Positions 8,583 through 61,809 of a DNA stretch of 64,000 nt are shown here, piece by piece. How positions within the stretch are numbered: position 1 is the first letter of the stretch; each line of letters starts with the position of its first letter. The stretch lies in sequence record MH791414.1, one strand, 5' to 3'. The notes under the pieces are model-generated. The model had not been told where the DNA came from. It did not search any database and was given only the letters and a program-made list of their open reading frames with translations. A program made the position numbers and the translations under genes.

Positions 8583-9755
8583 TTAGAAGTCGAACAAGTC
8601 TTCAAGAGAAGTAGTTTTTTCTTGAGTCCAACAAACAGCGTCACAAATAGCCTGTAACGGTTTTTGGAAGTGCTTGCAATACATCCCTACGAAATCAATA
8701 TCCTTTTCTGGAATTATCCCAAAATCTTCAGGAATTTTATCACCAGAAGGCCACGCGATTGTTTCGATGTGGAATTTATTAGGAACCTTCAACATCGCAT
8801 ACTGGATTTTTTCACCAGAACGGATCGGGTCCACATAACTTCCTTTTTCTGTCAGGTCATGGCAAATCTTGTTGTAGTTGATCGCAGCTCTAACGTGACC
8901 GGGACAACCACTAACAGGAGTAAAGTTTTCATGATTCTTTTCGATGTTATTGGCACTACTTACTTGTGCAATACGTCTATAATCCTGCTTACTGTACTCG
9001 TCACGGACTTTCTCAACATGGTTGTGTAGGTCGGTCTCGGTCTGTGTCAGGATGATGTCTATGGCGGTTTCAAGCTGTTCTGACGCGAATGGTGGTGTGC
9101 TACTACGTCTAGTTTCGATACCCATGATCTTGAGCTTAGGAACCACATTACCATGTTCGTCAATTTTTCTCTTACCTTCGTTATCCCAAACAGAAAGAGC
9201 ATATCGCTTTTTCTTAGTCCAGAATCCACGAGTTGCGATTACTTCTCGGTCCATAAACAGTTTATGATCGAAATAGTTCATATAGTCTTTCAATTCTCTA
9301 TATGACGCATCAATATAAGGTTCTACTTTTTCTTTTGCGAAACGATCTAGCAAATCAACCCATTCAATAACTGGAACATCACCGATTTCAACCCCACGCT
9401 TTTTAGCTAGAAGTTTTACAATCCCATCGGCTCGAACATATTGTGAGTCAGTATCACAATATACAACATAATCGATTCCACTTGTCCCACACAACTTATT
9501 GAAATACTCATTGGTCTTTCTGGAAATCCATTTAATTGCAAGTTGTCCACCCATGGTAATAGATTCCGCCATTCTGAGGTCATAATATCTACCTACCGGG
9601 TGACCCAAAGAACCATAAAGTGAGTTAATCAATACCTTTTTTGCTTGTTGGGTGACGTTACACACCTTTTCGTATTTTCTACAATCTGAAATGAGCTGCT
9701 TTAGCTCATCATCAGACATATTATGAAGTTGTTCATCAGTATAATCTAGATTCAT
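8583..9755 (-). CDS. 43B: DNA polymerase B, C-terminal subunit gp43B
   Basis: KVLINSLYG, YCDTDS and KKRYAL motifs; PIP-like C-terminus SLEDLFDF. Confidence 0.95.
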   Translation of the reverse strand: MNLDYTDEQLHNMSDDELKQLISDCRKYEKVCNVTQQAKKVLINSLYGSLGHPVGRYYDLRMAESITMGGQLAIKWISRKTNEYFNKLCGTSGIDYVVYCDTDSQYVRADGIVKLLAKKRGVEIGDVPVIEWVDLLDRFAKEKVEPYIDASYRELKDYMNYFDHKLFMDREVIATRGFWTKKKRYALSVWDNEGKRKIDEHGNVVPKLKIMGIETRRSSTPPFASEQLETAIDIILTQTETDLHNHVEKVRDEYSKQDYRRIAQVSSANNIEKNHENFTPVSGCPGHVRAAINYNKICHDLTEKGSYVDPIRSGEKIQYAMLKVPNKFHIETIAWPSGDKIPEDFGIIPEKDIDFVGMYCKHFQKPLQAICDAVCWTQEKTTSLEDLFDF

Positions 9756-9919
9756 CGACGCGCACTCACTTCTATATCGTTAATAATAAAATCCATACTA
9801 TTACAATCCATATCATAATAAGGATTTGAACCATTCTCGATAATGGTATTTTTTCTGTGATTTAGAAAATCTTTCATCCGTTGGATTGTTGCTTGGCTAA
9901 CAGGCTGAAATAAAAACAT
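9752..9919 (-). CDS. small ORF between 43A and 43B (55 aa from in-frame ATG; possibly 63 aa through a -1 shift from ATG 9942)
   Basis: stop overlaps the gp43B start (ATGA); SD-positioned ATG at 9942 is out of frame by one base. Confidence 0.55.
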   Translation of the reverse strand: MFLFQPVSQATIQRMKDFLNHRKNTIIENGSNPYYDMDCNSMDFIINDIEVSARR

Positions 9920-9947
9920 CGCTTTGAATTCTTCTAAATCATATTTT

Positions 9948-11465
9948 TTATCCGTGTCGTTCTGCAAGGATACGTGCGGCTCGTGTAGCAAGTGCATCAG
10001 CTTTAAACTCCTCTTTTTTGGCATCTTTACGTTGCAAGAATACTTTTTCTACTTCAATCGGAAGAAAACCGCGCTTCGCGTTGTCGTATCGAACACCGTT
10101 TGCTGCAACAGAATATTTTCCTTCGTGTGGTACTTCATATTGTTTGGTAACTAAACCCATACCCTCAATATCTGGAACCATACGGTCTTTAACTAGAATT
10201 TTTGGGAAATCTAATTGGTCAACCAAAGTCTCAGGAGAAATATTCTCAGACATGATGATGTGTGGATACAGAGAAGTTAAGTCAAAAGACAACAACCACT
10301 CATACAAGCCGGGTTTTGGTTCTTTAACAAACGCACCCGCAAACTTAGACCGTTGGGCATGTTTGTTTTCTGGAATAATTACGTGTTCTGCCAACAGGCT
10401 ATTATAAATAATAGCGTCCCATGTTTTTAGTGGGCTGAATACGTCAGGTGCGTTTATTCCCGCATAATACGAAACTGATGCAATCAGGAAGATCAAACTT
10501 AGCCGTTCTTCCAACTTCTTGATAATTTCAACGTCTCGGATCGCATAGTCAATATAAGTTTGTGGGTCTTTCGTGGCAAACATCAAATATGTTTTATATG
10601 GCATTTCCACTTTATTAATACCCAGCTCACATTCCGCGATTGTATCCAACTTATAGTTTGGTCTGGTTGTGAATGTAAATTTCTTATATGCAGCCATGAA
10701 ATCAACACAGTTAACACCCTGAATGACATAAGTAACCACATCATCATCGTTGTCGTCTTTTGATATAACCTGTGTGGTCTCTCCAAACGGTGAAAGTTTA
10801 TGGATAAATCTCTCACCAAGCACCTTTTTAATACGACCAATCACATAAGGAATATCAAAGAATTCACTATTCCAACCGCTTAGATAATGCGGTGTGTTGG
10901 TAACAAAAAATTGCAAGAACTTAACCAAAACGTCTTTTTCGGATTCACACTTGATATATTCAACGTCATGTAGAACTTTACCATCAATGATTGATTTTTC
11001 TACATCCCATTCGCGAGTTGTCCAGATATAGTATTTCTTTTTCTTTGTACTATAGATCTGAATTGTATCAATTTCATATTCATGTTCTATTGCATGTGGG
11101 AAAGGTCCATCGGTTGGGACCTCGATATCCAAAAACATGATATCAAGCATAGTGTAATCATAAACAGAATTAGCCCCATAAGTATCAGAAATATACTGGA
11201 ATGTATAATTGTCCATTCCCAATACTTCTTTACCCATAGACTGCATCTCTTTAAACCATTTTCTAGCTTCTCCAATAGAATCTAGTGATTTGGGAAGACA
11301 CCGACGACCATAGATGTCTCGATATGGAGTTTCAATGTGATCACCAACGTGGCGATATAGGGTTGGAGCGAACCTAACTTTACGAATCTGGTCTTGTCCA
11401 GCATCGTTAAAATATCGGTCATAGATGGTGTTTCCATCCATCCAAACGCTTGTATAAAAATTCAT
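9948..11465 (-). CDS. 43A: DNA polymerase B, N-terminal subunit gp43A
   Basis: ExoI FLDIE, GWNSEFFDIPY, YAIRD and SFDLTSLYP motifs; ends in the fingers helix; CAGGAG SD before ATG 11465. Confidence 0.95.
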   Translation of the reverse strand: MNFYTSVWMDGNTIYDRYFNDAGQDQIRKVRFAPTLYRHVGDHIETPYRDIYGRRCLPKSLDSIGEARKWFKEMQSMGKEVLGMDNYTFQYISDTYGANSVYDYTMLDIMFLDIEVPTDGPFPHAIEHEYEIDTIQIYSTKKKKYYIWTTREWDVEKSIIDGKVLHDVEYIKCESEKDVLVKFLQFFVTNTPHYLSGWNSEFFDIPYVIGRIKKVLGERFIHKLSPFGETTQVISKDDNDDDVVTYVIQGVNCVDFMAAYKKFTFTTRPNYKLDTIAECELGINKVEMPYKTYLMFATKDPQTYIDYAIRDVEIIKKLEERLSLIFLIASVSYYAGINAPDVFSPLKTWDAIIYNSLLAEHVIIPENKHAQRSKFAGAFVKEPKPGLYEWLLSFDLTSLYPHIIMSENISPETLVDQLDFPKILVKDRMVPDIEGMGLVTKQYEVPHEGKYSVAANGVRYDNAKRGFLPIEVEKVFLQRKDAKKEEFKADALATRAARILAERHG

Positions 11466-14708: not shown

Positions 14709-17047
14709 TCTCTTTCCATTACTGTGAAACGACCTTTCTTAGTCATTTTAATATGACTTGTGAAGCTATCGTCCCTATTTTCGACTCGGTGAGAAATGAT
14801 GAAGGTATTACCACCAATTTCAGCAAGAAGTCTATTCACAGCATATACACCCTCAGAATCCATACCACCATCGAAAATCTCATCGAGAATTAACATGGAA
14901 ATCTTAGTACCGGAAACTATAGATGCGATATAACGCCATGTGAAAAGAAGTGCAATATTAATTCGTGCCTTTTCACCTTGAGAGAAGGACATATAACTAA
15001 ATTCTTCTCTACCCCTTGATTTAATGGATTCTTCAAACGAATCATCGAGAGAGAATACATAATCCGCACCAGTAATAGAGAGATATTCATTAATTTTCTT
15101 GTTGAAAAGTGGAATATATTTCTTAACGATATTGGCTTTAATACCGTCGTCCTTCAACATATCTTTAATTATACCACGGCAATACTTTTCGTTGAACAAT
15201 TCTTCTCGATCTTTGCCTTTAGAAATAAGCAACTCCGAAACCTCGGTCAGTCTTTCCGAGACAAATTGCTTCTCTTTAAGCTTGTCAACTTCGAGCTTCA
15301 TAGATTTCGCAATTTCTGCGTTATCTTTTGCACTATTTTCAAGATTTTGTATTGTCTGTTCCAGATTATACTTGGTTTTATTGAAAGAATCAACTAATTC
15401 TACATATTCTTTCTTTGCAACTTCGATTTCCTTATCTAGATCTAACTCAATACGGTCTAGTTTCATTTGGCTATCATTAAGATCCCGCTCCTTGCTAAGA
15501 AGTGAACTAGCCTTTTCGGTTTCCAAAGAAATAACCTTGCGTTGGGTTTCCCCTGAAATAGATTCCAAGCGGGTTTTCGCTTGTGTAATTTTGGTTTGAA
15601 GCTCGATAGTCTCTTGGGATGCTTTCATATTAGCATCAGAGATTTCATCCAATTTAGACTTTTCAAATTGAGATTTCTTCTCGTTATATTCTTTTTCCAA
15701 ACTCTGATACAACTCAACAGACTTCTTCGCTTCTGTGAATTTATCATCTCGGGTTTTTTCCAGATCGATTTTCTTAGACTCATATTCAGCCAGCTGTTTT
15801 TTCGCCGCTTCTAATTGAGACTTAGTTTCTTCGATGTGTGGGTGACCCTCTGATACATTCGCCTGACATGTAGGACAAACACCATCAGCAAAATTGGAAA
15901 GAATTGAAGTCTTCTCACGGATGATGTATTTTTTCTCTGCTATATCACCATCTAATTTTGAAATTTGTTGGTTGATCTCGGTTGGGTCAAAGTGAATCCG
16001 ATTATCTTCTGGTGGAAGTTCTTCAAACACACGACTTTCGATTTTAGAGATCAATTCATCAAGTTCTGATTTTACGTTCTGGTACTTGGATTCGAGATCT
16101 TTAATTTCTGAAATATACGAAGATTCGTCAACTACCTCATTTTTAGCAGCATCAATCCGTTGGTCGAAATCTTTATTGATTTCTTCTATTTCACTAGACA
16201 GTCTAATAATACGGGCTTGTAGATCAATTTTACCCACGGAGTATTTTTGTTGAATATTACTAACAATAGATTCAACAACACTCTCATCTGGTTTATTTTT
16301 CAGATGAGTTTCCAGTTCGGTTTGTTTTGATTCGATTTCATCCTTATAACCTTTTACTTTAGCTACGATATTTCGGATCTGGTTACTTTGGGATTCAATC
16401 ATTTCGTCATTCTGACGCTTTTGGTCTTCGAGGGAACGTAGAATCGTGTTTCTTTCGTTCTCAATACCATTAACCTCAACATCCAGAAGGTCCATCTTGG
16501 TGTTAAGCTGCTTCAGAGCCGCTTGGTTGAGTTTGTTCATATCACCCAATACAGACAGTTGAAGAAGGTCTTCAACCATTGTACGACGGCTTTCAGGCTT
16601 CAATTCCATGAAGGGGGTATACCCAGCAGTACCAAGAACGATAAGTTGCTTAAACGACTCATGAGATACGTTTAGTACGTCTTCTTCTAGGATACGTTGA
16701 TATTCGGTGGCAGAAGCGGCTTCGGCAATTGGTTCACCGTCAACGGTAACCTTAAAGATGTTAGGTTTGATTCCTCGTTCGATATGAACGACTCGACCAT
16801 CAATCGTAACCTCACCTTGTACATGAAGGGCTTTCTTGTTAATGGTATTAACAAGCTGTTCCTTTTTCAATTTCCGATAGGGTTTACCATAAAGGAGAAA
16901 TGAAATAGCTTCAATCATAGTGGATTTACCGGCTCCATTACTCCCAGTGATAAGAGTCTTTGTGCTTTCATCCAACTGTACGCGAATTGGTGCAGCACCA
17001 ACAGACAGGATATTTTTGTATTCGATCCAATTAAATATAATATTCAT
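14705..17047 (-). CDS. 46: SMC/Rad50-like recombination ATPase gp46 with extended coiled coil
   Basis: GSNGAGKST, zinc-hook CPTC, FSQGE and ILDEIFD motifs. Confidence 0.96.
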   Translation of the reverse strand: MNIIFNWIEYKNILSVGAAPIRVQLDESTKTLITGSNGAGKSTMIEAISFLLYGKPYRKLKKEQLVNTINKKALHVQGEVTIDGRVVHIERGIKPNIFKVTVDGEPIAEAASATEYQRILEEDVLNVSHESFKQLIVLGTAGYTPFMELKPESRRTMVEDLLQLSVLGDMNKLNQAALKQLNTKMDLLDVEVNGIENERNTILRSLEDQKRQNDEMIESQSNQIRNIVAKVKGYKDEIESKQTELETHLKNKPDESVVESIVSNIQQKYSVGKIDLQARIIRLSSEIEEINKDFDQRIDAAKNEVVDESSYISEIKDLESKYQNVKSELDELISKIESRVFEELPPEDNRIHFDPTEINQQISKLDGDIAEKKYIIREKTSILSNFADGVCPTCQANVSEGHPHIEETKSQLEAAKKQLAEYESKKIDLEKTRDDKFTEAKKSVELYQSLEKEYNEKKSQFEKSKLDEISDANMKASQETIELQTKITQAKTRLESISGETQRKVISLETEKASSLLSKERDLNDSQMKLDRIELDLDKEIEVAKKEYVELVDSFNKTKYNLEQTIQNLENSAKDNAEIAKSMKLEVDKLKEKQFVSERLTEVSELLISKGKDREELFNEKYCRGIIKDMLKDDGIKANIVKKYIPLFNKKINEYLSITGADYVFSLDDSFEESIKSRGREEFSYMSFSQGEKARINIALLFTWRYIASIVSGTKISMLILDEIFDGGMDSEGVYAVNRLLAEIGGNTFIISHRVENRDDSFTSHIKMTKKGRFTVMERD

Positions 17048-29168: not shown

Positions 29169-30068
29169 TTGATGAACTATGGACATTGGACTACTGATGA
29201 AAAATTCGATCCAAGGGATATTCTTGGATTTGTTTATATGATATACTTCTCCAACGGGAAAAAGTATATTGGTGCTAAACGAGTATGGAAAAACCTTAAA
29301 CGTCCACCTGCCACATACAAGAGGCAAGGTAAAACAGAATTTATAGAATCTGATTGGAGAAGTTACCGATCCAGTTCTAACGAAGTCGTTGAGCTGGAAG
29401 CAGCCGGTATCGAAATAACCGAAATGCGTATCTTGGCAACGTATGATTCGTGGGGTAAGGTTCTTCTTTGTGAAGCAATGCTTCAATTCTCTTTGAATGC
29501 ATTGTCCTCTGATACATACCTAAACAAACAGATCGAAGGTTTGTTCACATCTGCATGTTTTGATAAAAAAGTATATAATGACGTTGCCCGATGCGTAGCA
29601 ATCGAGCAATACGACCCGACCACACCACAAGTAATCGTTTATCGCGGTGGTGATCGAAGTATCATATGTGATAAACCAACCGCCAAAGAGTATATCAGAT
29701 CAGGGTGGTCTGTTGCTTCACTTCCTTCAACATATCAACGTAAAAGCTATCCAATGATACCATACACAATCAAGTGTAAGGATACTGGGGAAGAGATTAC
29801 AATATGTGATTTCAAAAAGCAATATGAAGTTGCAAAAAAACTTGAATGTCCTGCTGGGGACCTAAGTCGCCTTAGAGCTGGTGAAATCCTTAACATTGGG
29901 ACTTTCACCATGAAAGATGTTAGGTCCCCCCAAATGTGGGAGAAGGACGGACAATTTTATTACAATGCTGCGGACCTTAAAAATGCTGGGGTAGATAAAA
30001 AAGATTGTATCCATCACCCGGCAGAAGACCGAGAAGCATATAGGATCAGGCTTGCATTAGCAGTATAG
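29169..30068 (+). mobile_element. free-standing GIY-YIG homing endonuclease (Seg-like), antisense to neighbours
   Basis: GFVYMIYFSNGKKYIGAK, conserved Arg/Glu and YLNKQI; CTAAATA at 29134..29140 and GAGG SD. Confidence 0.8.
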
Positions 30069-30179
30069 CCAAGCACCAACACAGAAGACCCACTCATACC
30101 ATAAAGTAATGAGTTGTGGGTTAGTCCGATAACATGCTGGAACAAGATTGATTCGGATAGTTTTTTGTTCGGTTTTCAT
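30057..30179 (-). CDS. 40-aa peptide (not in ORF track)
   Basis: MKTEQKTIRINLVPACYRTNPQLITLWYEWVFCVGAWLYC; AAGGA SD; TTTACT-N17-TAGGAT promoter near 30213..30241. Confidence 0.5.
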   Translation of the reverse strand: MKTEQKTIRINLVPACYRTNPQLITLWYEWVFCVGAWLYC

Positions 30180-30256: not shown

Positions 30257-30364
30257 ACGAACGAAGTGAGTCGCCGGAGGCGGTTCGCTACGCTCACAAT
30301 TTTAGTTTCACTTGTAATCAAACTATAAAATCTCTATAAGTAATTTAATAGAAGATCTATAATT
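30257..30364. repeat. intergenic element copy A: module X (30257..30297) then module Y (30302..30364)
   Basis: X is 41/41 identical to 52966..53006; Y is 56/63 identical to 52900..52962. Confidence 0.95.
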
Positions 30365-30393
30365 TGATTTCATATGATACTATTATAAGGACG

Positions 30394-30423
30394 AAAAAGC
30401 CTACCCTTTTGGGTAGGCTTTTT
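30394..30423. terminator. bidirectional intrinsic terminator
   Basis: aaaaagcctaccc-tttt-gggtaggcttttt. Confidence 0.85.
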
Positions 30424-30426
30424 CAT

Positions 30427-33400
30427 TTATACTATCTTCCATAAGGTGTTTTGGAATTTCAAACCCACTTCACCGTTTGGTCGTATATCTATGACCTTAT
30501 ATTGACTTGTTGGTTCAATCCATCTATCCACATCCGGATCTTTAGCGATAACATAGTTACCAGATCCAATCGCAGCATATTTAGTTTGAATAATACCATC
30601 AATATTTAGTTGTACTTCCAATTCGGTGTAAGGAGTTATTTTCCCTTCAAATTCGATGATCATACTATAAGAAGAACCACCACTTACAATCTTGGAGATC
30701 TTATTATCGTAGATATAAACGTCGTCTTTGAGTCTACCGTTTCCAGCCACACCCCCAATTGAAGAATCCCAACCAACTACACCACCACCGGTTTTCAATA
30801 AAACAGACCGTAATTTTTTACGGAAAGTTAAACTGTTCTGTATAATGTTGTTGGATGGTATGACATAACCACTATCAGCCAATTTATATACACGAGAGCT
30901 TGAAACCATATTAGAACTTTCAATCATATCAACTTGTCGAACAACAGATGCGTTATTTCTCAAACACATATTTGACGATATACCATCAACGTGATTATAT
31001 GTAGAGTTATTGACAACACCATTTGTTTTAATAGATAGGTTAGGAAAATTATATTGAATATCAATATCAAATTCTTTACCAGCAACAATACCATGGTTTA
31101 CAGTAATGTTACTAATTGTCGTCCCACGATTTTTTACAACGAATTGTAATGTGGTTCCTAATAGGGTAACGAATATTCCATGAGTTTTATCTGTATTATC
31201 CAAATAATAACCAACGGTGAAATTATCACCTAAAAATCTCAATCTCCATGATTCTTTTTGTGGTGTCCATGCAGGTAAGATATTTAGATAGTTGTTATTC
31301 GCTAAATTTGGAACCCAAGAACTCATCGTGTTACCAATCATTTGAGGTTCTTCAAATTCTTGGAAGAAATAGCTAGATGTAGCAACGTCAGTCCCCATTG
31401 CGTCGGTCTTTGTTGTATACACTACCAAACTACGTATTGTTACGATATCACCATTTCTGGCATTTGGTACACATACATACAGACCTGAATCATGAGTCGA
31501 TTCTGTGTGGTTTTGATACAATACACCCTTATATCTTCCAGTCGGAAGGGATTTCATAATACTACCAACACCAACGGTTGTACCATATACATCCTTTAAA
31601 TATAGTGGTCGTGGACAATCTATATCGTATTCTATACGGAATCTACCCCTTGGTGGTAAATTTAAATTGAATGTCATCCCACCTTCGGAAACGTCTTTGA
31701 TGAATTTAAATCGGTTGTTACTTAAAACCTGAATAGGCTGGTTTAATTCATCCGACATTTTCCATTTTGATAGATCAACTGTATCATATACCAACACCTT
31801 ATAACCATTTTTGTCTTCTATTCCAGTGGAATAATAGTTCAATCTAGATTCCGGGTTGTTTATATATGTCCTAGCGTCGTTATCACCAACCATGGTAATA
31901 TCCCATATGTTACCATTCCAGCATTCTGTTTTATTATATCTTCCACCGATAGTTCTAATAACAGAACCAACTTTCAATTCCAAAACAAGACTATGAGGAA
32001 CATACGGAGCCAATACACCACCAGTATATGGTTTTCCATCTAACTGGACAATAGAAAAGTGTTGACTTGATAGGTTCAGTGTTCTTGTTCTTGTAAGATA
32101 TATCCAACCACCTTGTAACTCTTGGGTATTTGAACTTCTCCCGTCAAACAAATACATATTGAAATCTGTCACATTGAGAATGAAGTTCAGAGTTATATAT
32201 CCATTTTTGTTTAGAGAATACAACGGGGGAATTTCCAAACAAGTACCACCATTGAAATTATATGTGTATTTTTTGTTCTTAACCCATTCTATTACAGGTT
32301 TTTCGCTATTTATATCTGGATCTGTATAACAATCAACGTCAAATTTAAGATTTGTCATATTACCAGAAGTAATCCAGTTTCTACCATCCAGTCTAAAAAA
32401 GAAAAGGTGTCTCGGTTGTAGATTTGCAGCAACTTGTCTCTCGGCTGTTACTTCATATCTTTTATTCAACTCGATACCAGTATTAAGAACTGCACCATTA
32501 TTTTCTACTATAGTAACCCAAGCTTTAGATCCGGCTTTCATACCAGCAGGTATTAACTGACTTCCTACACCACAATACAACCAACCACCGCCTGCATCAG
32601 GGACTATATTTGACCCAGAATAATAAATACCGCTAGATGGACTAGAACCTTTAATGAAATTAAGCTTCTCCGACTGTGAATACTCATAGTATCTAGAGTT
32701 ATTCGGGATTAGATAATCTTCATATTCGGATGTGATTATATAACCACTCATTTCAGAACCAACTCTAATTTCTTGGAAAGTCCTTTTATCTAAGTCTTCA
32801 ATTACCTCAGTACCTACAAGAACACCATTCACATAGAATTTGATATTTGGACTATCTACTTCCAATTTATAAAGATATTCTTTGTTGCAAGAAACGATAC
32901 CATTGGATCTAATTGTTTTTCCTGCATAAGTCACTATGTGACCCATACCAAGCGGATCCGATTGTGTCGTCATACCAATGAATATGGTATCATCTGACCC
33001 AGAACCAATCCTATTTGCTGGGACGTTAGTATCTGTATATACCATCGAAATGAAATATGAGAACTTTCTACCAACAACCAGTAATGGGTCTTTTATATAT
33101 TTTCCGTCGTTATATACAAATTGAGGAAAACTGACAGGTTCCAAATTACCGTACTCAAAAGCTGTTACATTCTTCTCTTTAATGCTCCCTACGATATCAC
33201 CACCAGTCTCTACAGCATCCTCTGTGATGAAACCCCACTGACCTATTGTCGCTTTACCATCTTTTTGTACATTAGGTTTTTTTCTAAAAATAGAAACAGA
33301 TCTAACCCCAGTAGTTCCCACGTATTGCGATTTGATAGGCCACGATGTTGCATAGACCATGATACGATCTATTCCATTAGGGACAACAAAATCATTGTAT

Positions 33401-34206
33401 ACAGAATCCCATTGACCAGATGTATCTAAAGAGCTTACATATCCGGATGTAACGGATGTAGTCCCGTTATATCCAATGTAATAAAATCTAACAGATTCCC
33501 CTGCCGCAGCGGCAAGATCATCTCTATATGTATCTAAACTGAATCTTAATGTCTCACCCTGATTAACTATCAGTTCGGAAAGCAAAACTTTATTCAGATA
33601 CATGTTTATTTCTGGTGTTGTAGTTTTGGAATTCATATATTCTTTTTGGTCAGATACAATAGAATTACCATATCCAACTACACCGATATCTGCAAATGTA
33701 TCAAAAACGACTTCAAGAGATACTTTAATAGCAGAACTAACGCCATATTGTTCAACCATAATCTTTTTCAGACCACAGTCATATATAGCTGCATATCTGG
33801 TATTTTGTGTTCCGGTTGTTGGGTCCCAATGATTATTCCACCCAATACTACCGATTTTCTTAAAGTAGTTGTTTATTGTGGTAGTTGTTGCATTTTCACC
33901 ATGTGATATCATCAAAATAATTCCAGATGTAACCGAAGACATCCAACCTTCGAATCTATTCACATCTGTACTGTTTTTAAAATTAAAAACGTCTCGCATA
34001 CCAACGCTGAGATCGTTATTTATACTAACGCATTCGAGGCCATCAACCTCAACAGGGTTAATAGAAAATCCGTTAATAGCTAATATCTTTTTTTCTGTAT
34101 TCGTTTTTGGTGAAATTTTTATCTGATTAAGACCAGAGAAATTTTCGGAAAGTTTATTAGACTTAATCCCACCATTCGAAATACTTGATATAACAAGTTC
34201 GGCCAT
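30427..34206 (-). CDS. large gp35-like tail fibre hinge/adhesin (1259 aa) with several beta-sandwich/lectin-like domains
   Basis: follows 34; N-terminal ILEI-like segment GIILMISHG...YAAIYD; Trp/Gly-rich beta modules. Confidence 0.7.
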   Translation of the reverse strand: MAELVISSISNGGIKSNKLSENFSGLNQIKISPKTNTEKKILAINGFSINPVEVDGLECVSINNDLSVGMRDVFNFKNSTDVNRFEGWMSSVTSGIILMISHGENATTTTINNYFKKIGSIGWNNHWDPTTGTQNTRYAAIYDCGLKKIMVEQYGVSSAIKVSLEVVFDTFADIGVVGYGNSIVSDQKEYMNSKTTTPEINMYLNKVLLSELIVNQGETLRFSLDTYRDDLAAAAGESVRFYYIGYNGTTSVTSGYVSSLDTSGQWDSVYNDFVVPNGIDRIMVYATSWPIKSQYVGTTGVRSVSIFRKKPNVQKDGKATIGQWGFITEDAVETGGDIVGSIKEKNVTAFEYGNLEPVSFPQFVYNDGKYIKDPLLVVGRKFSYFISMVYTDTNVPANRIGSGSDDTIFIGMTTQSDPLGMGHIVTYAGKTIRSNGIVSCNKEYLYKLEVDSPNIKFYVNGVLVGTEVIEDLDKRTFQEIRVGSEMSGYIITSEYEDYLIPNNSRYYEYSQSEKLNFIKGSSPSSGIYYSGSNIVPDAGGGWLYCGVGSQLIPAGMKAGSKAWVTIVENNGAVLNTGIELNKRYEVTAERQVAANLQPRHLFFFRLDGRNWITSGNMTNLKFDVDCYTDPDINSEKPVIEWVKNKKYTYNFNGGTCLEIPPLYSLNKNGYITLNFILNVTDFNMYLFDGRSSNTQELQGGWIYLTRTRTLNLSSQHFSIVQLDGKPYTGGVLAPYVPHSLVLELKVGSVIRTIGGRYNKTECWNGNIWDITMVGDNDARTYINNPESRLNYYSTGIEDKNGYKVLVYDTVDLSKWKMSDELNQPIQVLSNNRFKFIKDVSEGGMTFNLNLPPRGRFRIEYDIDCPRPLYLKDVYGTTVGVGSIMKSLPTGRYKGVLYQNHTESTHDSGLYVCVPNARNGDIVTIRSLVVYTTKTDAMGTDVATSSYFFQEFEEPQMIGNTMSSWVPNLANNNYLNILPAWTPQKESWRLRFLGDNFTVGYYLDNTDKTHGIFVTLLGTTLQFVVKNRGTTISNITVNHGIVAGKEFDIDIQYNFPNLSIKTNGVVNNSTYNHVDGISSNMCLRNNASVVRQVDMIESSNMVSSSRVYKLADSGYVIPSNNIIQNSLTFRKKLRSVLLKTGGGVVGWDSSIGGVAGNGRLKDDVYIYDNKISKIVSGGSSYSMIIEFEGKITPYTELEVQLNIDGIIQTKYAAIGSGNYVIAKDPDVDRWIEPTSQYKVIDIRPNGEVGLKFQNTLWKIV

Positions 34207-52815: not shown

Positions 52816-52842
52816 ATTATAACATGGTAGAATGATATTCTT

Positions 52843-52882
52843 AATCAAAATTGGATGGATACTTTTTCATCCAATTTTGATT
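52843..52882. repeat. perfect 15-bp inverted repeat
   Basis: aatcaaaattggatg N10 catccaattttgatt. Confidence 0.9.
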
Positions 52883-52899
52883 AGTTTTTGATCAAAATA

Positions 52900-53006
52900 T
52901 TAGTTTCAATTGCAATCAAACTATAGATTCTCTATAAGTATTTATATAGAAGATCTATAATTAGAACGAACGAAGTGAGTCGCCGGAGGCGGTTCGCTAC
53001 GCTCAC
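52900..53006. repeat. intergenic element copy B: module Y (52900..52962) then module X (52966..53006)
   Basis: see copy A at 30257..30364; module order is swapped. Confidence 0.95.
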
Positions 53007-53043: not shown

Positions 53044-53610
53044 ATGAAAAGACGAATCGTAACTCTAATAGGTACTAGATACCCACAAAAAGAATATCAA
53101 GACCTAATGGTGCGCATCGGAAAGGCGTTTTCTGAAAAAGGATATGGTGCTCGTTCTGGTGGTGCTATTGGTTCTGATACTCTATTTTTACAAGAATATG
53201 ATCCTAAGCTAACTATCATTTATAGACCCGATGATAGACCCGGATGTGTGAATGTAAAGAATCATGAAAATTATTATGAATTTGAACTTATTGCCTCACG
53301 TGTTCATTGTTTAGGTTCTGGTGTTGGATGGGAATTTATGCCTATAGGACATCAAGAACTTCACGCAAGAAATGTACCCCAAGTAATGGGTCTGAATCTA
53401 AAAACGTATTCAGATCTTGTGGTGTTCTGTGCCGATGAAAATCATCGTGGTACGGTTTCTGGTGGAACAGCAACCGCTGTTAAAATAGCCCGGTCCTTAA
53501 ATATTCCAACTATCAATATTATGAATGACGAGCAAAGAAAGAAGCTTTGTCAATGGCTAAAAATAGAAGATATACCGAAATATGAAAAGGTGGACATTTT
53601 CAACCTCTAA
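53044..53610 (+). CDS. SLOG-superfamily (DprA/Smf/YpsA-like) nucleotide-binding protein
   Basis: LIGTR, RSGGAIGSD, HARN, DLVV and SGGTATAVKIA motifs. Confidence 0.8.
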   Translation: MKRRIVTLIGTRYPQKEYQDLMVRIGKAFSEKGYGARSGGAIGSDTLFLQEYDPKLTIIYRPDDRPGCVNVKNHENYYEFELIASRVHCLGSGVGWEFMPIGHQELHARNVPQVMGLNLKTYSDLVVFCADENHRGTVSGGTATAVKIARSLNIPTINIMNDEQRKKLCQWLKIEDIPKYEKVDIFNL

Positions 53611-53649: not shown

Positions 53650-53994
53650 ATGAAAAACTCACCACGGAAAATAGCTCACAAAGCCCATGATGCAATTCGA
53701 CGTTTTAATTTGGTTCTTGGAGATACCGATACTTTATGGAAAGATGAGCCAGAACGTGTTAAACGTGTTTGGTCTAAACATGTTTCTTATATAATTGACC
53801 ATCCTGATTCTGACGCAAGAACAGTTCACGATCTATGGAGGACATATAAACATAAAGAAGGGTGGATCTTCGGGGAAGAAAAATCATCAGAGGATAAGAC
53901 ACACCCATGTCTTACAACATATGACGACCTTCACGAAATTGAAAAGATGAAGTATTACATTTTCATGGAAACTATAAAAGAGCATAATAAATAA
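53650..53994 (+). CDS. RyR (ryanodine receptor repeat) domain protein
   Basis: HDLW...KEGWIFG...KTHPCLTTYDDL...EK motif. Confidence 0.8.
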   Translation: MKNSPRKIAHKAHDAIRRFNLVLGDTDTLWKDEPERVKRVWSKHVSYIIDHPDSDARTVHDLWRTYKHKEGWIFGEEKSSEDKTHPCLTTYDDLHEIEKMKYYIFMETIKEHNK

Positions 53995-57241: not shown

Positions 57242-57364
57242 TTTTATTTTCCTTTAAGGTTTATATTTTAAAAAGTTTTCGGATGAAAGAACCATTTCCT
57301 TCTCTCCTTACAAAATTATTTAGGGGTGATTTTTTATAGTGTTTTTAACCACCCCTGAAATTAA

Positions 57365-58231: not shown

Positions 58232-58918
58232 TTAACTTTTTAATGCTTCGATTAAATTCTTAATCGCCTCATCATCTGTATTATTTAGGGGTTCATTTTT
58301 TGACTCATTCATACGATAAGCATTTGTATAAGCACTAGGAGCACTCGGACCCCAAACAACGTCAACACCAACAGTTAGTTTATATCCCTCTTGAACCTCA
58401 TTAAGCCCCTTAGAATTACGTTTTAGAGACCCCAGTCCACGAGAACTAACACCGGGAACCCAACCAGCGCGAATTAAAGCCGCAACTTTATCACCTTCTG
58501 CACCATCACCCTCGACAATTCTAGCCTTACCCCAAACATCATTTCCTTTCCACCATAGTTTTTCAATAACCAAGGCAGCATGTTTAGGATCTGGATAAGA
58601 TCTATTTCCGGGGTGATTAAGTTCACCAATAGATTGTTTGATATTAACTTGCTCTTTTATATATTTATCAACTGCCTTTTCCAAAATCTTTTTCGGATAA
58701 ATCCGACCATTTCCATTTGGAATTTCAGCTTGAAGGAAAATACCCTCTATATACAAATTACCAGTATCTTTATCGTTGTATGATTCAACGAGTAACCCTT
58801 TACCATTACTCTCTGAAACACCTTCAGGACAACCCCAATTTTCAATTAGGAGTTTAACGTCTGATGGTTTTCCCGAATCTCTTCCTTCCCAAGTTTCGTT
58901 TATTGTGTCCATGATCAA
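58232..58918 (-). CDS. 21: prohead protease gp21
   Basis: IEGIFLQAE, NGRIYP, GELNHP, GVSSRGLGS and DVVWGPSAP. Confidence 0.96.
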   Translation of the reverse strand: MIMDTINETWEGRDSGKPSDVKLLIENWGCPEGVSESNGKGLLVESYNDKDTGNLYIEGIFLQAEIPNGNGRIYPKKILEKAVDKYIKEQVNIKQSIGELNHPGNRSYPDPKHAALVIEKLWWKGNDVWGKARIVEGDGAEGDKVAALIRAGWVPGVSSRGLGSLKRNSKGLNEVQEGYKLTVGVDVVWGPSAPSAYTNAYRMNESKNEPLNNTDDEAIKNLIEALKS

Positions 58919-61746: not shown

Positions 61747-61809
61747 TATTGAAAACCTCTTTAACTGATTTTATTTAGGGGTTGATTTTTCAACCCCTTT
61801 GTGTTTTAA

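Follow-up and report, generated by a model that had tools for sequence, protein, structure and literature searches.

A two-module element at six evenly spaced sites in the T4-like Aeromonas phage Aswh_1 and its possible role in replication initiation

The stretch of DNA analysed here (the window, 64,000 nucleotides) carries two non-coding modules, X and Y, that lie side by side at two places, once between an open reading frame (ORF) for a SegE-type GIY-YIG domain and a gp35-like tail-fibre gene (copy A), and once between a strong intrinsic terminator and a DprA-like gene (copy B). In BLAST searches, the 100% match of both copies is Aeromonas phage Aswh_1 (MH791414.1), a T4-like phage of the genus Ishigurovirus (Emmerichvirinae, Straboviridae) with a genome of 229,730 bp. 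Window positions equal record positions minus 62000, as checked on the whole genome rebuilt from five pieces. X is identical in the two copies (41/41; no match was found in 100 shuffles), while Y is 86% identical over 74 nt on the same strand (30294-30367 versus 52892-52965), and X precedes Y in copy A but follows it in copy B. By the GenBank annotation, the copies fill the window's two largest non-coding gaps, and each lies beside an intrinsic terminator. These observations agree with an original prediction made from the letters of the window alone, which described the element as a modular cis-element present in two copies. The two copies are real, but a search of the whole genome, which that prediction had proposed, finds six X+Y loci rather than two, with X measuring 41 bp and Y ~66 bp (Table 1).

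The standard unit consists of Y, then 0-9 nt, then X. It is found at 5/6 Aswh_1 loci, where X lies 3' of Y, and copy A is the sole exception. X occurs in either orientation relative to Y with its sequence identical, and the same X is present at four loci (A, B, L4 and L6) whose flanks differ; neighbouring genes likewise differ from one locus to the next. The Y-then-X unit also occurs in the relatives CC2, AS-szw, Assk, AP1, AS-zj, avDM6 and phage 65, and besides Aswh_1, BLAST matches only ~20 records, all from Aeromonas phages classed as Ishigurovirus or Ceceduovirus. When flanks are compared by tblastx, the six Aswh_1 loci have syntenic counterparts in five CC2 loci and locus A of AS-szw, with that of L6 displaced by a few genes within a variable region, and synteny with phage 65 and avDM6 also holds at the loci checked. 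Several of the loci sit inside conserved core regions. Since the loci are syntenic between Ishigurovirus and Ceceduovirus, the element is old and fixed in position rather than recently mobile. On the circular map, the six loci are spaced more evenly than random points (P = 0.002 for a variance as low, 0.011 for a minimum gap as large and 0.003 for a maximum gap as small), with gaps of 23-50 kb and a mean of 38 kb.

The Y-then-X direction is independent of gene direction, being sense at B, L5 and L6 and antisense at L1 and L4 in both genera. The units at L1 and L4 point against all neighbouring genes in both genera, and that at L4 runs into a hairpin terminator and the 3' end of gp54, with the terminator after X conserved in both; most loci have no terminator after X. 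The L5 unit heads the ndd/gp52 region. At locus B, both genera have a terminator just upstream of Y (at the same place in CC2) and a DprA-like gene after X. Long inverted repeats with arms AATCAATTC...GAATTGATT adjoin several of the loci, for example at Aswh_1 record positions ~190250-190330 (after L5) and ~227770-227860 (before L6), and are also seen in avDM6 and CC2; their arm motif resembles the invariant AATCAAA of Y.

Table 1. Features of the X+Y element in the window and loci in the whole Aswh_1 genome (window positions unless marked as record)
Feature	Position	Strand	Description
ORF, 299 aa, SegE-type GIY-YIG domain	29169-30068	+	Pfam PF19835, E = 6e-29
Small conserved ORF, 40 aa, phrog_33162	30057..30179	-	Downstream of X in the ancestral Y-then-X direction
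Module X, copy A	30257..30297	.	Three mini-hairpins
H1, copy A	30257-30271	+	Tandem G.A; ACGAAC-GAA-GTGAGT
H2, copy A	30272-30282		CGCC-GGA-GGCG
H3, copy A	30283-30297		Minus-strand complement GTGAGC-GTA-GCGAAC is the second G.A hairpin
Module Y, copy A	30302..30367	+	Flipped relative to ancestral; left arm 30302-30322, then dyad-symmetric core
TATAAT (-10-like), copy A Y	30358..30363	+	After the flip, aimed at terminator and tail-fibre gene
Remnant of ancestral Y left arm, TTTGATTTCATATGATACTA	30363..30382	-	Beside terminator
Two-way intrinsic terminator	30393..30424	.	3' end of gp35-like tail-fibre gene
gp35-like tail-fibre gene	30427-34206	-
Strong intrinsic terminator	52841..52884	+	19-bp stem and T run; directly upstream of copy B Y
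Module Y, copy B	52900..52965	+	Standard orientation; TATAAT 52956-52961
Module X, copy B	52966..53006	.	H1 52966-52980, H2 52981-52991, H3 52992-53006
DprA-like gene	53044..53610	+	37 nt after copy B X, same direction as Y
ORF after DprA-like gene, RyR domain	53650-53994	+	Pfam PF02026, E = 5e-11
Locus L1	record 48.3 kb		Genome search; diverged X, reversed relative to Y
Locus A	record 92.3 kb		Genome search; X on the other side of Y
Locus B	record 114.9 kb		Genome search; X forward relative to Y
Locus L4	record 158.1 kb		Genome search; X reversed relative to Y
Locus L5	record 190.4 kb		Genome search; diverged X, forward relative to Y
Locus L6	record 227.7 kb		Genome search; X reversed relative to Y

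Module X is GC-rich (~63% G+C by our own count) within an AT-rich genome. Comparison of ten distinct variants, each oriented along Y, resolves three adjacent local hairpins, H1, H2 and H3, in which 95.5% of the cells are paired; the stems are 4-6 bp, and there is no T run. H1 has the form NN-GA-NN-GNA-NN-GA-NN (e.g., ACGAAC-GAA-GTGAGT, GTGAGC-GAA-GCGAAC or ACGAGT-GAA-ACGAGT), and the tandem G.A pairs of X lie in the pyrimidine-GA-purine context that the stability of such pairs requires. H2 is a GC stem of 3-5 bp with a loop that is mostly GNA on either strand (GGA, GAA, GTA, GCA), the exceptions being AAA and a tetraloop, while H3, when read on the opposite strand (H3'), is a second hairpin of the H1 type. 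The loops of H1 and H3' are mainly GAA or GTA, with a tetraloop in H3' of two variants, and nearly all loops are closed by C-G. The fold is supported by compensatory changes, as 9/11 pairs are altered on both sides, and by a covariation score of 0.71 versus 0.29 ± 0.04 in shuffled data and at most 0.10 when the partners are slid. The original prediction was thus right that X is structured, but the covariance analysis it called for favours the three local hairpins over its own gtgag/ctcac outer stem, which pairs 90% of the cells and has one pair that fails in 4/10 variants. Two other folds were rejected: a long-range pairing of CGAAC with GTTCG (86% of cells paired; one pair fails in 6/10 variants) and the single long hairpin that is the RNA minimum-energy fold of the Aswh_1 variant (65.7% paired in extension, no compensatory change).

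One-sided, G-U-type changes are absent from X (0 in 110 cells of its pairs; the lone C.A cell, in H3, reads G.T on the opposite strand), which argues that pairing is kept on both strands. Each strand starts with a purine-mismatch hairpin, whose partner on the other strand has pyrimidine mismatches. An RNA made from one strand would gain nothing from H3 because H3 is pyrimidine-mismatched on that strand. C-GNA-G triloops and tandem sheared G.A pairs are marks of very stable DNA mini-hairpins, whose RNA versions are far weaker. The lack of G-U-type intermediates and the purine-mismatch hairpin at the start of each strand point to X acting as DNA hairpins on both strands, not as RNA. Having one G.A/GNA hairpin per strand, X should also work alike in either orientation.

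These features make it improbable that the unit is a gene for a small structured RNA, as had been suggested, with Y as the promoter, X as the RNA and a nearby terminator. Such a gene would account for locus L4, where Y and X are followed by a hairpin terminator in both genera, and for a GC-rich X in an AT-rich genome. It sits poorly with the missing terminator at most loci, with the tandem pyrimidine mismatches of the third hairpin on the transcribed strand, and with a strand-symmetric X that has DNA-stable GNA loops, contains no G-U pairs and is used identically in both orientations. No Rfam family was matched in the whole window at gathering thresholds. At E-values up to 10, the matches to 301 bases around copy A centre on the terminator, none of the matches to 241 bases around copy B overlaps X, and none in either region attains its gathering score.

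Module Y was aligned from fifteen distinct copies, which have the invariant blocks TAGTTTCA, TG.AATCAAA, TCTATAA, ATAGAA and T.TATAATTAGAAA. A TATAAT lies 4-13 nt before X; its sole variant, TACAGT at L5 of Aswh_1, still fits TAnnnT. The core is an imperfect palindrome with arms at ~17-37 and ~45-65, each reading TATAGAA-N4-TATAATT-GA. Where three CTATA units had been noted, this dyad-symmetric core contains four boxes of the TCTATA type, one of them inverted relative to the other three, at intervals of about one helical turn. The boxes are repeated as described, but at 7-8 bp and in mixed orientation, they are not iterons in the sense of direct repeats of 17-22 bp, as had been proposed. X and Y alike are under strong constraint across two phage genera, neither module is coding and their relative orientation is not fixed; the element is indeed a modular cis-element.

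The ordinary early and middle promoters of Aswh_1 read TTGACx-17-TAnnnT or TGnTATAAT. Y differs from these, and its combination of motifs occurs only at the six loci in the genome, which rules it out as an ordinary early promoter. A late promoter on the reverse strand of Y was also rejected because the T4 late motif TATAAATA is not enriched but under-represented (24 copies genome-wide versus ~39 expected, with 5/24 inside Y) and the genes concerned have their own CTAAATA; the late-promoter motif of Aswh_1 is (C)CTAAATA, which lies upstream of most late genes. CTAAATA is also found in a repeat family (D6) at window positions 57316-57344, 58281-58309 and 61771-61799.

The exchanged order of modules in copy A had been read as a designed feature, with each module selected independently of order. 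In phage 65, avDM6, CC2 and AS-szw, however, locus A has X then Y on the minus strand, which is the standard unit, pointing to the small ORF, the SegE-like gene and nrdA, and Y is on the plus strand at this locus only in Aswh_1 and its relative ZPAH1 (98-99% identity). In Aswh_1, the Y core is flanked by inverted copies of its 21-nt arm, and the remnant TTTGATTTCATATGATACTA matches the ancestral left arm in phage 65 at 19/23 positions in a by-eye alignment rather than a tool count. Because the remnant of the old arm persists and the other phages examined have the standard unit, the exchange is best described as a local flip or inverted duplication of Y, confined to the Aswh_1/ZPAH1 lineage. 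At locus B, CC2, Assk and AP1 carry X the other way round from Aswh_1, so that each module has been flipped in place once in the Aswh_1 lineage. The flipped modules keep the family features: X of copy B is unchanged at 41/41 positions, and Y of copy A retains nearly all invariant positions, including TATAAT. The SegE-like ORF, which lies between nrdA and copy A, keeps this position in both genera, and the annotations of phage 65, CC2 and AS-zj call it a homing endonuclease. Elsewhere in the window, gene 43 appears to be split, as the annotation gives the DNA polymerase two ORFs (record 70583-71755 and 71948-73465; window 8583-11465, minus strand) separated by a small one.

A mobile or circularly permuted selfish element, either like a miniature inverted-repeat transposable element or a mini-circle product of promoter-early stem-loops (PeSLs), would explain why four X copies are 100% identical within unlike flanks and why the module order differs in copy A. 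We consider this very improbable. Synteny of all six positions holds across two genera, relatives have as many copies, and a local flip with a remnant arm left behind accounts for copy A; moreover, no target-site duplications or terminal inverted repeats were seen in the flanks beyond the modules, although no dedicated search for them was made.

X copies within one genome evolve together. Just as four loci have identical X in Aswh_1, one X variant, different from that of Aswh_1, is common to four loci in CC2 (L1, B, L4 and A), which implies frequent recombination or gene conversion between loci. This co-evolution would also suit a DNA-level protein-binding or structural site that acts without transcription, such as a dyad operator, a recombination hot spot or the target of a cruciform-binding protein, topoisomerase or structure-specific nuclease. 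Such a site would organise or break the genome at six places, and the breaks could seed recombination-dependent replication. The dyad symmetry of both X and Y, the four phased TCTATA boxes, the indifference to orientation and the even spacing are all in keeping with it, as is the coincidence of T4 origins with recombination hot spots reportedly described, to go by a title, by Kreuzer and Alberts in 1985 (cited in PMC3016281). We regard it as possible but unlikely, since the conserved TATAAT with its TAnnnT variant resembles a -10 element and no candidate binding protein was identified. In the AS-zj records, two loci have an N exactly within the element, and locus A lacks part of X and Y; this may reflect assembly or sequencing trouble at the hairpins.

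Taken together, we tentatively read X+Y as a six-copy, fixed cis-element of the Emmerichvirinae that may serve as a transcription-opened site of replication initiation, although we put this at somewhat less than an even chance. What favours initiation is the strand symmetry of X, its DNA-type loops, its lack of G-U pairs and its tolerance of orientation, along with the six fixed, evenly spaced sites, some sense and some antisense as in T4. A phage or host factor would bind Y and recruit RNA polymerase to TATAAT, and transcription would start 6-8 nt downstream of it, at the edge of X. With the duplex open, the two strands of X could each snap into very stable DNA mini-hairpins, with a G.A/GNA hairpin at the 5' end of each strand and the GC hairpin in the middle. 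These hairpins would resist single-strand-binding protein and hold the site open as an R-loop or cruciform, whereas the weaker third hairpin on each strand would stay accessible to helicase and primase, allowing priming in both directions. This weak hairpin always holds a G(T/C)T triplet, which would serve as a T4-type primase recognition triplet if the specificity of T4 gp61 applies. Promoter activity, hairpin extrusion and the link to replication are all inferred here.

Several observations weigh against an initiation site. There is no consistent shift in GC skew at the six loci. The nearest-neighbour DNA folding energy of X is no better than that of shuffled sequences (z ~0), although nearest-neighbour parameters may miss the stability of sheared G.A pairs and GNA loops. 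Y has no -35 element, and a sigma-70 consensus scan finds no promoter in it; the sequence 17 bp upstream of its TATAAT reads TATAAG or CTATAA. Aswh_1 encodes AsiA, but tblastn with T4 MotA as the query gives no hit (E above 3), neither Pfam nor PDB matches the gene in the motA position, and Y contains no TGCTT-type (MotA) box. The module downstream of TATAAT is the GC-rich X, while the AT-rich part, Y, lies upstream. Across the T4 genome, C-GNA-G hairpins show no general link to origins (2 within 200 bp versus 0.5 expected, both at oriG). Finally, the units at B, L6 and the CC2 locus L126 sit where an ordinary promoter is expected, with a ribosome-binding site and ATG 16-37 nt after X (16-22 nt at L6 and L126) and, at B, a terminator upstream.

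This last point bears on the main alternative, possible but less likely than an initiation site, in which the unit is a special promoter and leader cassette related to PeSL regulatory cassettes and has no role in replication. Here, Y would be a strong activator-dependent promoter, X, as the opening 40 nt of the transcript or a block adjoining the promoter, would stabilise or insulate the RNA, and the antisense copies would make regulatory antisense RNA. The invariant TATAAT ahead of X, the strong terminator directly 5' of Y with a gene downstream at locus B in both genera, and the start signals after X at L6 and L126 all speak for such a cassette, and the placement at B, L6 and L5 is equally expected of a dedicated promoter and leader. 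T4-like genomes are known to contain repeated terminator/promoter cassettes (PMC2839356, PMC4122927), and as RNA, the Aswh_1 X folds better than shuffled sequences (z ~ -2). Nonetheless, the RNA minimum-energy fold is not conserved, and an RNA role leaves the strand symmetry of X, its lack of G-U and its DNA-type loops unexplained. The absence of a -35 element sets Y apart from the ordinary early promoters, and in both genera two loci run antisense to the adjacent genes. PeSLs are also many and clustered in variable regions, with a terminating stem-loop upstream of the promoter, whereas the X+Y copies are only six, even and fixed, with X downstream and lacking a U run. A cassette of this kind and an initiation site are compatible, as T4 origins are themselves promoters.

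The hairpin design of X is not confined to these phages. The 15-mer ACGAACGAAGTGAGT has >112 exact matches in IMG/VR, and 45/117 matches are directly flanked by at least 4 perfect pairs versus ~0.5 expected. Because this flanking far exceeds expectation, ACGAACGAAGTGAGT is taken as a hairpin tip, one that recurs in many unrelated contigs and is nearly always intergenic. Within 0.95 Mb of those contigs, there are 40 further G.A/GNA hairpins with other stems versus ~2 in shuffles (~20-fold), some of them in clusters or X-like triplets. The IMG/VR phages that carry the tip show no match among isolated phages, PHROGs were uninformative for them, and the hairpins belong to no Rfam family. Six named and ~18 other IMG/VR loci are instances of a single non-coding locus, conserved among uncultivated phages with large (240-367 kb), low-GC genomes, in which AAGA-ACGAACGAAGTGAGT-TCTT is followed by a second hairpin, AGATGAAC-GAA-GTTCATCT, with a covarying stem, between conserved blocks; neither Rfam nor the isolated phages offer a match to this locus. 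In Escherichia phage DCP80 (Straboviridae), record positions 1-1286 hold a >1.2 kb non-coding region with ATGAGC-GAA-GCGAAT and ACGAAC-GAA-GTGAGT, several GC hairpins with GAA or TTCG loops, and AATCAATT motifs. None of the DCP80 hairpins belongs to an Rfam family, and judging from their form, the region looks like an X-like array in a distant member of the family.

We found no description of tandem-G.A/GNA hairpins as a signal class in the sources consulted, and to our knowledge, no sequence has been shown to be common to the origins of T4-like phages. That hairpins of the form N-Y-GA-NN-GNA-NN-GA-R-N are a widespread signal class of phage single-stranded DNA, and that a strand-symmetric pair of them with a dyad AT-rich module defines six evenly spaced, one-sequence origins in Aswh_1, is a joint proposition that we consider questionable but worth stating. 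For the element itself, an origin-like role is the best single reading, held with less than even confidence. If it is right, a T4-like phage with six copies of one two-module element would make the origin questions raised for T4 (PMC3016281) directly testable, with modules that can be swapped, flipped and deleted singly, and that nature has already flipped once each. The design would also link large double-stranded DNA phages to the mini-hairpin signals of small single-stranded DNA phages, RSF1010 and N4, and the enrichment of the tip in unrelated uncultivated phage contigs suggests that the signal may be general. Even if the unit is only a promoter cassette, it would still be a compact, orientation-tolerant regulatory part of unusual anatomy.

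Among known origins, those of T4 are the closest for comparison. T4 oriF and oriG each combine a middle-mode promoter with a downstream A+T-rich unwinding element, and the transcript forms a persistent R-loop that primes replication; the T4 origins have no local motif in common, and the review that states this asks how the R-loops form at oriF and oriG and whether other origins share the mechanism (PMC3016281). The T4 record places oriA at 16763, oriE at 79355, oriF at 115321 and oriG at 152947, and with oriC near rI.-1 (PMC3016281), the gaps are roughly 20-42 kb. According to the record notes, the mRNA itself serves as primer RNA at oriA and oriF, while the primer RNA is complementary to the transcript of gene 5 at oriE and runs opposite to the adjacent gene 34 at oriG. 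The X+Y element resembles oriF (uvsY) and oriG (34) in having several dispersed sites tens of kb apart and, with Y as a putative promoter, a sigma-70-type -10 sequence joined to a downstream element of ~50 bp. In T4, and by prediction for X+Y, the transcript need not code, some sites being antisense to late structural genes, and like oriG, one X+Y locus adjoins gp34/gp35 tail-fibre genes. On the other hand, X+Y is a repeated, sequence-conserved unit whereas the T4 origins lack a shared motif, its downstream element is a GC-rich hairpin block rather than A+T-rich, and oriF and oriG use a MotA box whereas no MotA was found in Aswh_1. Within gene 34, T4 oriG does carry GCGTAGC and TACAC-GAA-GTGTA (T4 153049-153075, minus strand), which lie upstream of the MotA box TTTGCTTCA at a distance of 15 nt; no GNA mini-hairpin occurs within 200 bp of any other annotated T4 origin.

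The core origins of simian virus 40/polyoma and herpes simplex virus (oriS), like the iteron origins of the T4 oriE region, R6K and lambda, have short boxes in dyad or several repeats, with an AT-rich core by a structured element. The four short boxes of Y with their dyad symmetry resemble these, but it is a resemblance only, as the boxes are 7-8 bp rather than direct repeats of ~17-22 bp and no initiator protein was found. PeSLs share with X+Y a repeated intergenic GC stem-loop and an AT-rich promoter or promoter-like region, sometimes with a ribosome-binding site and ATG, and recombination between copies is possible in both. They differ in having near-consensus -35 and -10 elements with a 17-bp spacer where Y has only a -10, in a polyG...polyC stem-loop where X has strand-symmetric mini-hairpins, and in their dozens of copies in hyperplastic/variable regions linked to indels.

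We know of no matching enzyme for X in Aswh_1. The hairpins of X find their nearest likeness in natural GNA mini-hairpin sites, namely the priming origins of G4, St-1 and alpha3, ssiA of RSF1010, and the N4 virion RNA polymerase promoters with GGA/GAA loops (PMC13037366). In common with these complementary-strand origins, with ssiA/ssiB and with the N4 promoters, X has C-GNA-G triloops (GGA, GAA, GTA, GCA) on short GC stems, several hairpins side by side and, as in ssiA/ssiB, a signal on each strand. Hairpins of this kind keep single-strand-binding protein off. The known signals use DnaG, RepB' or virion RNA polymerase, and tandem G.A pairs flanking the tip are not among their features in PMC13037366, whereas X combines both marks within a 230-kb double-stranded, T4-like genome.

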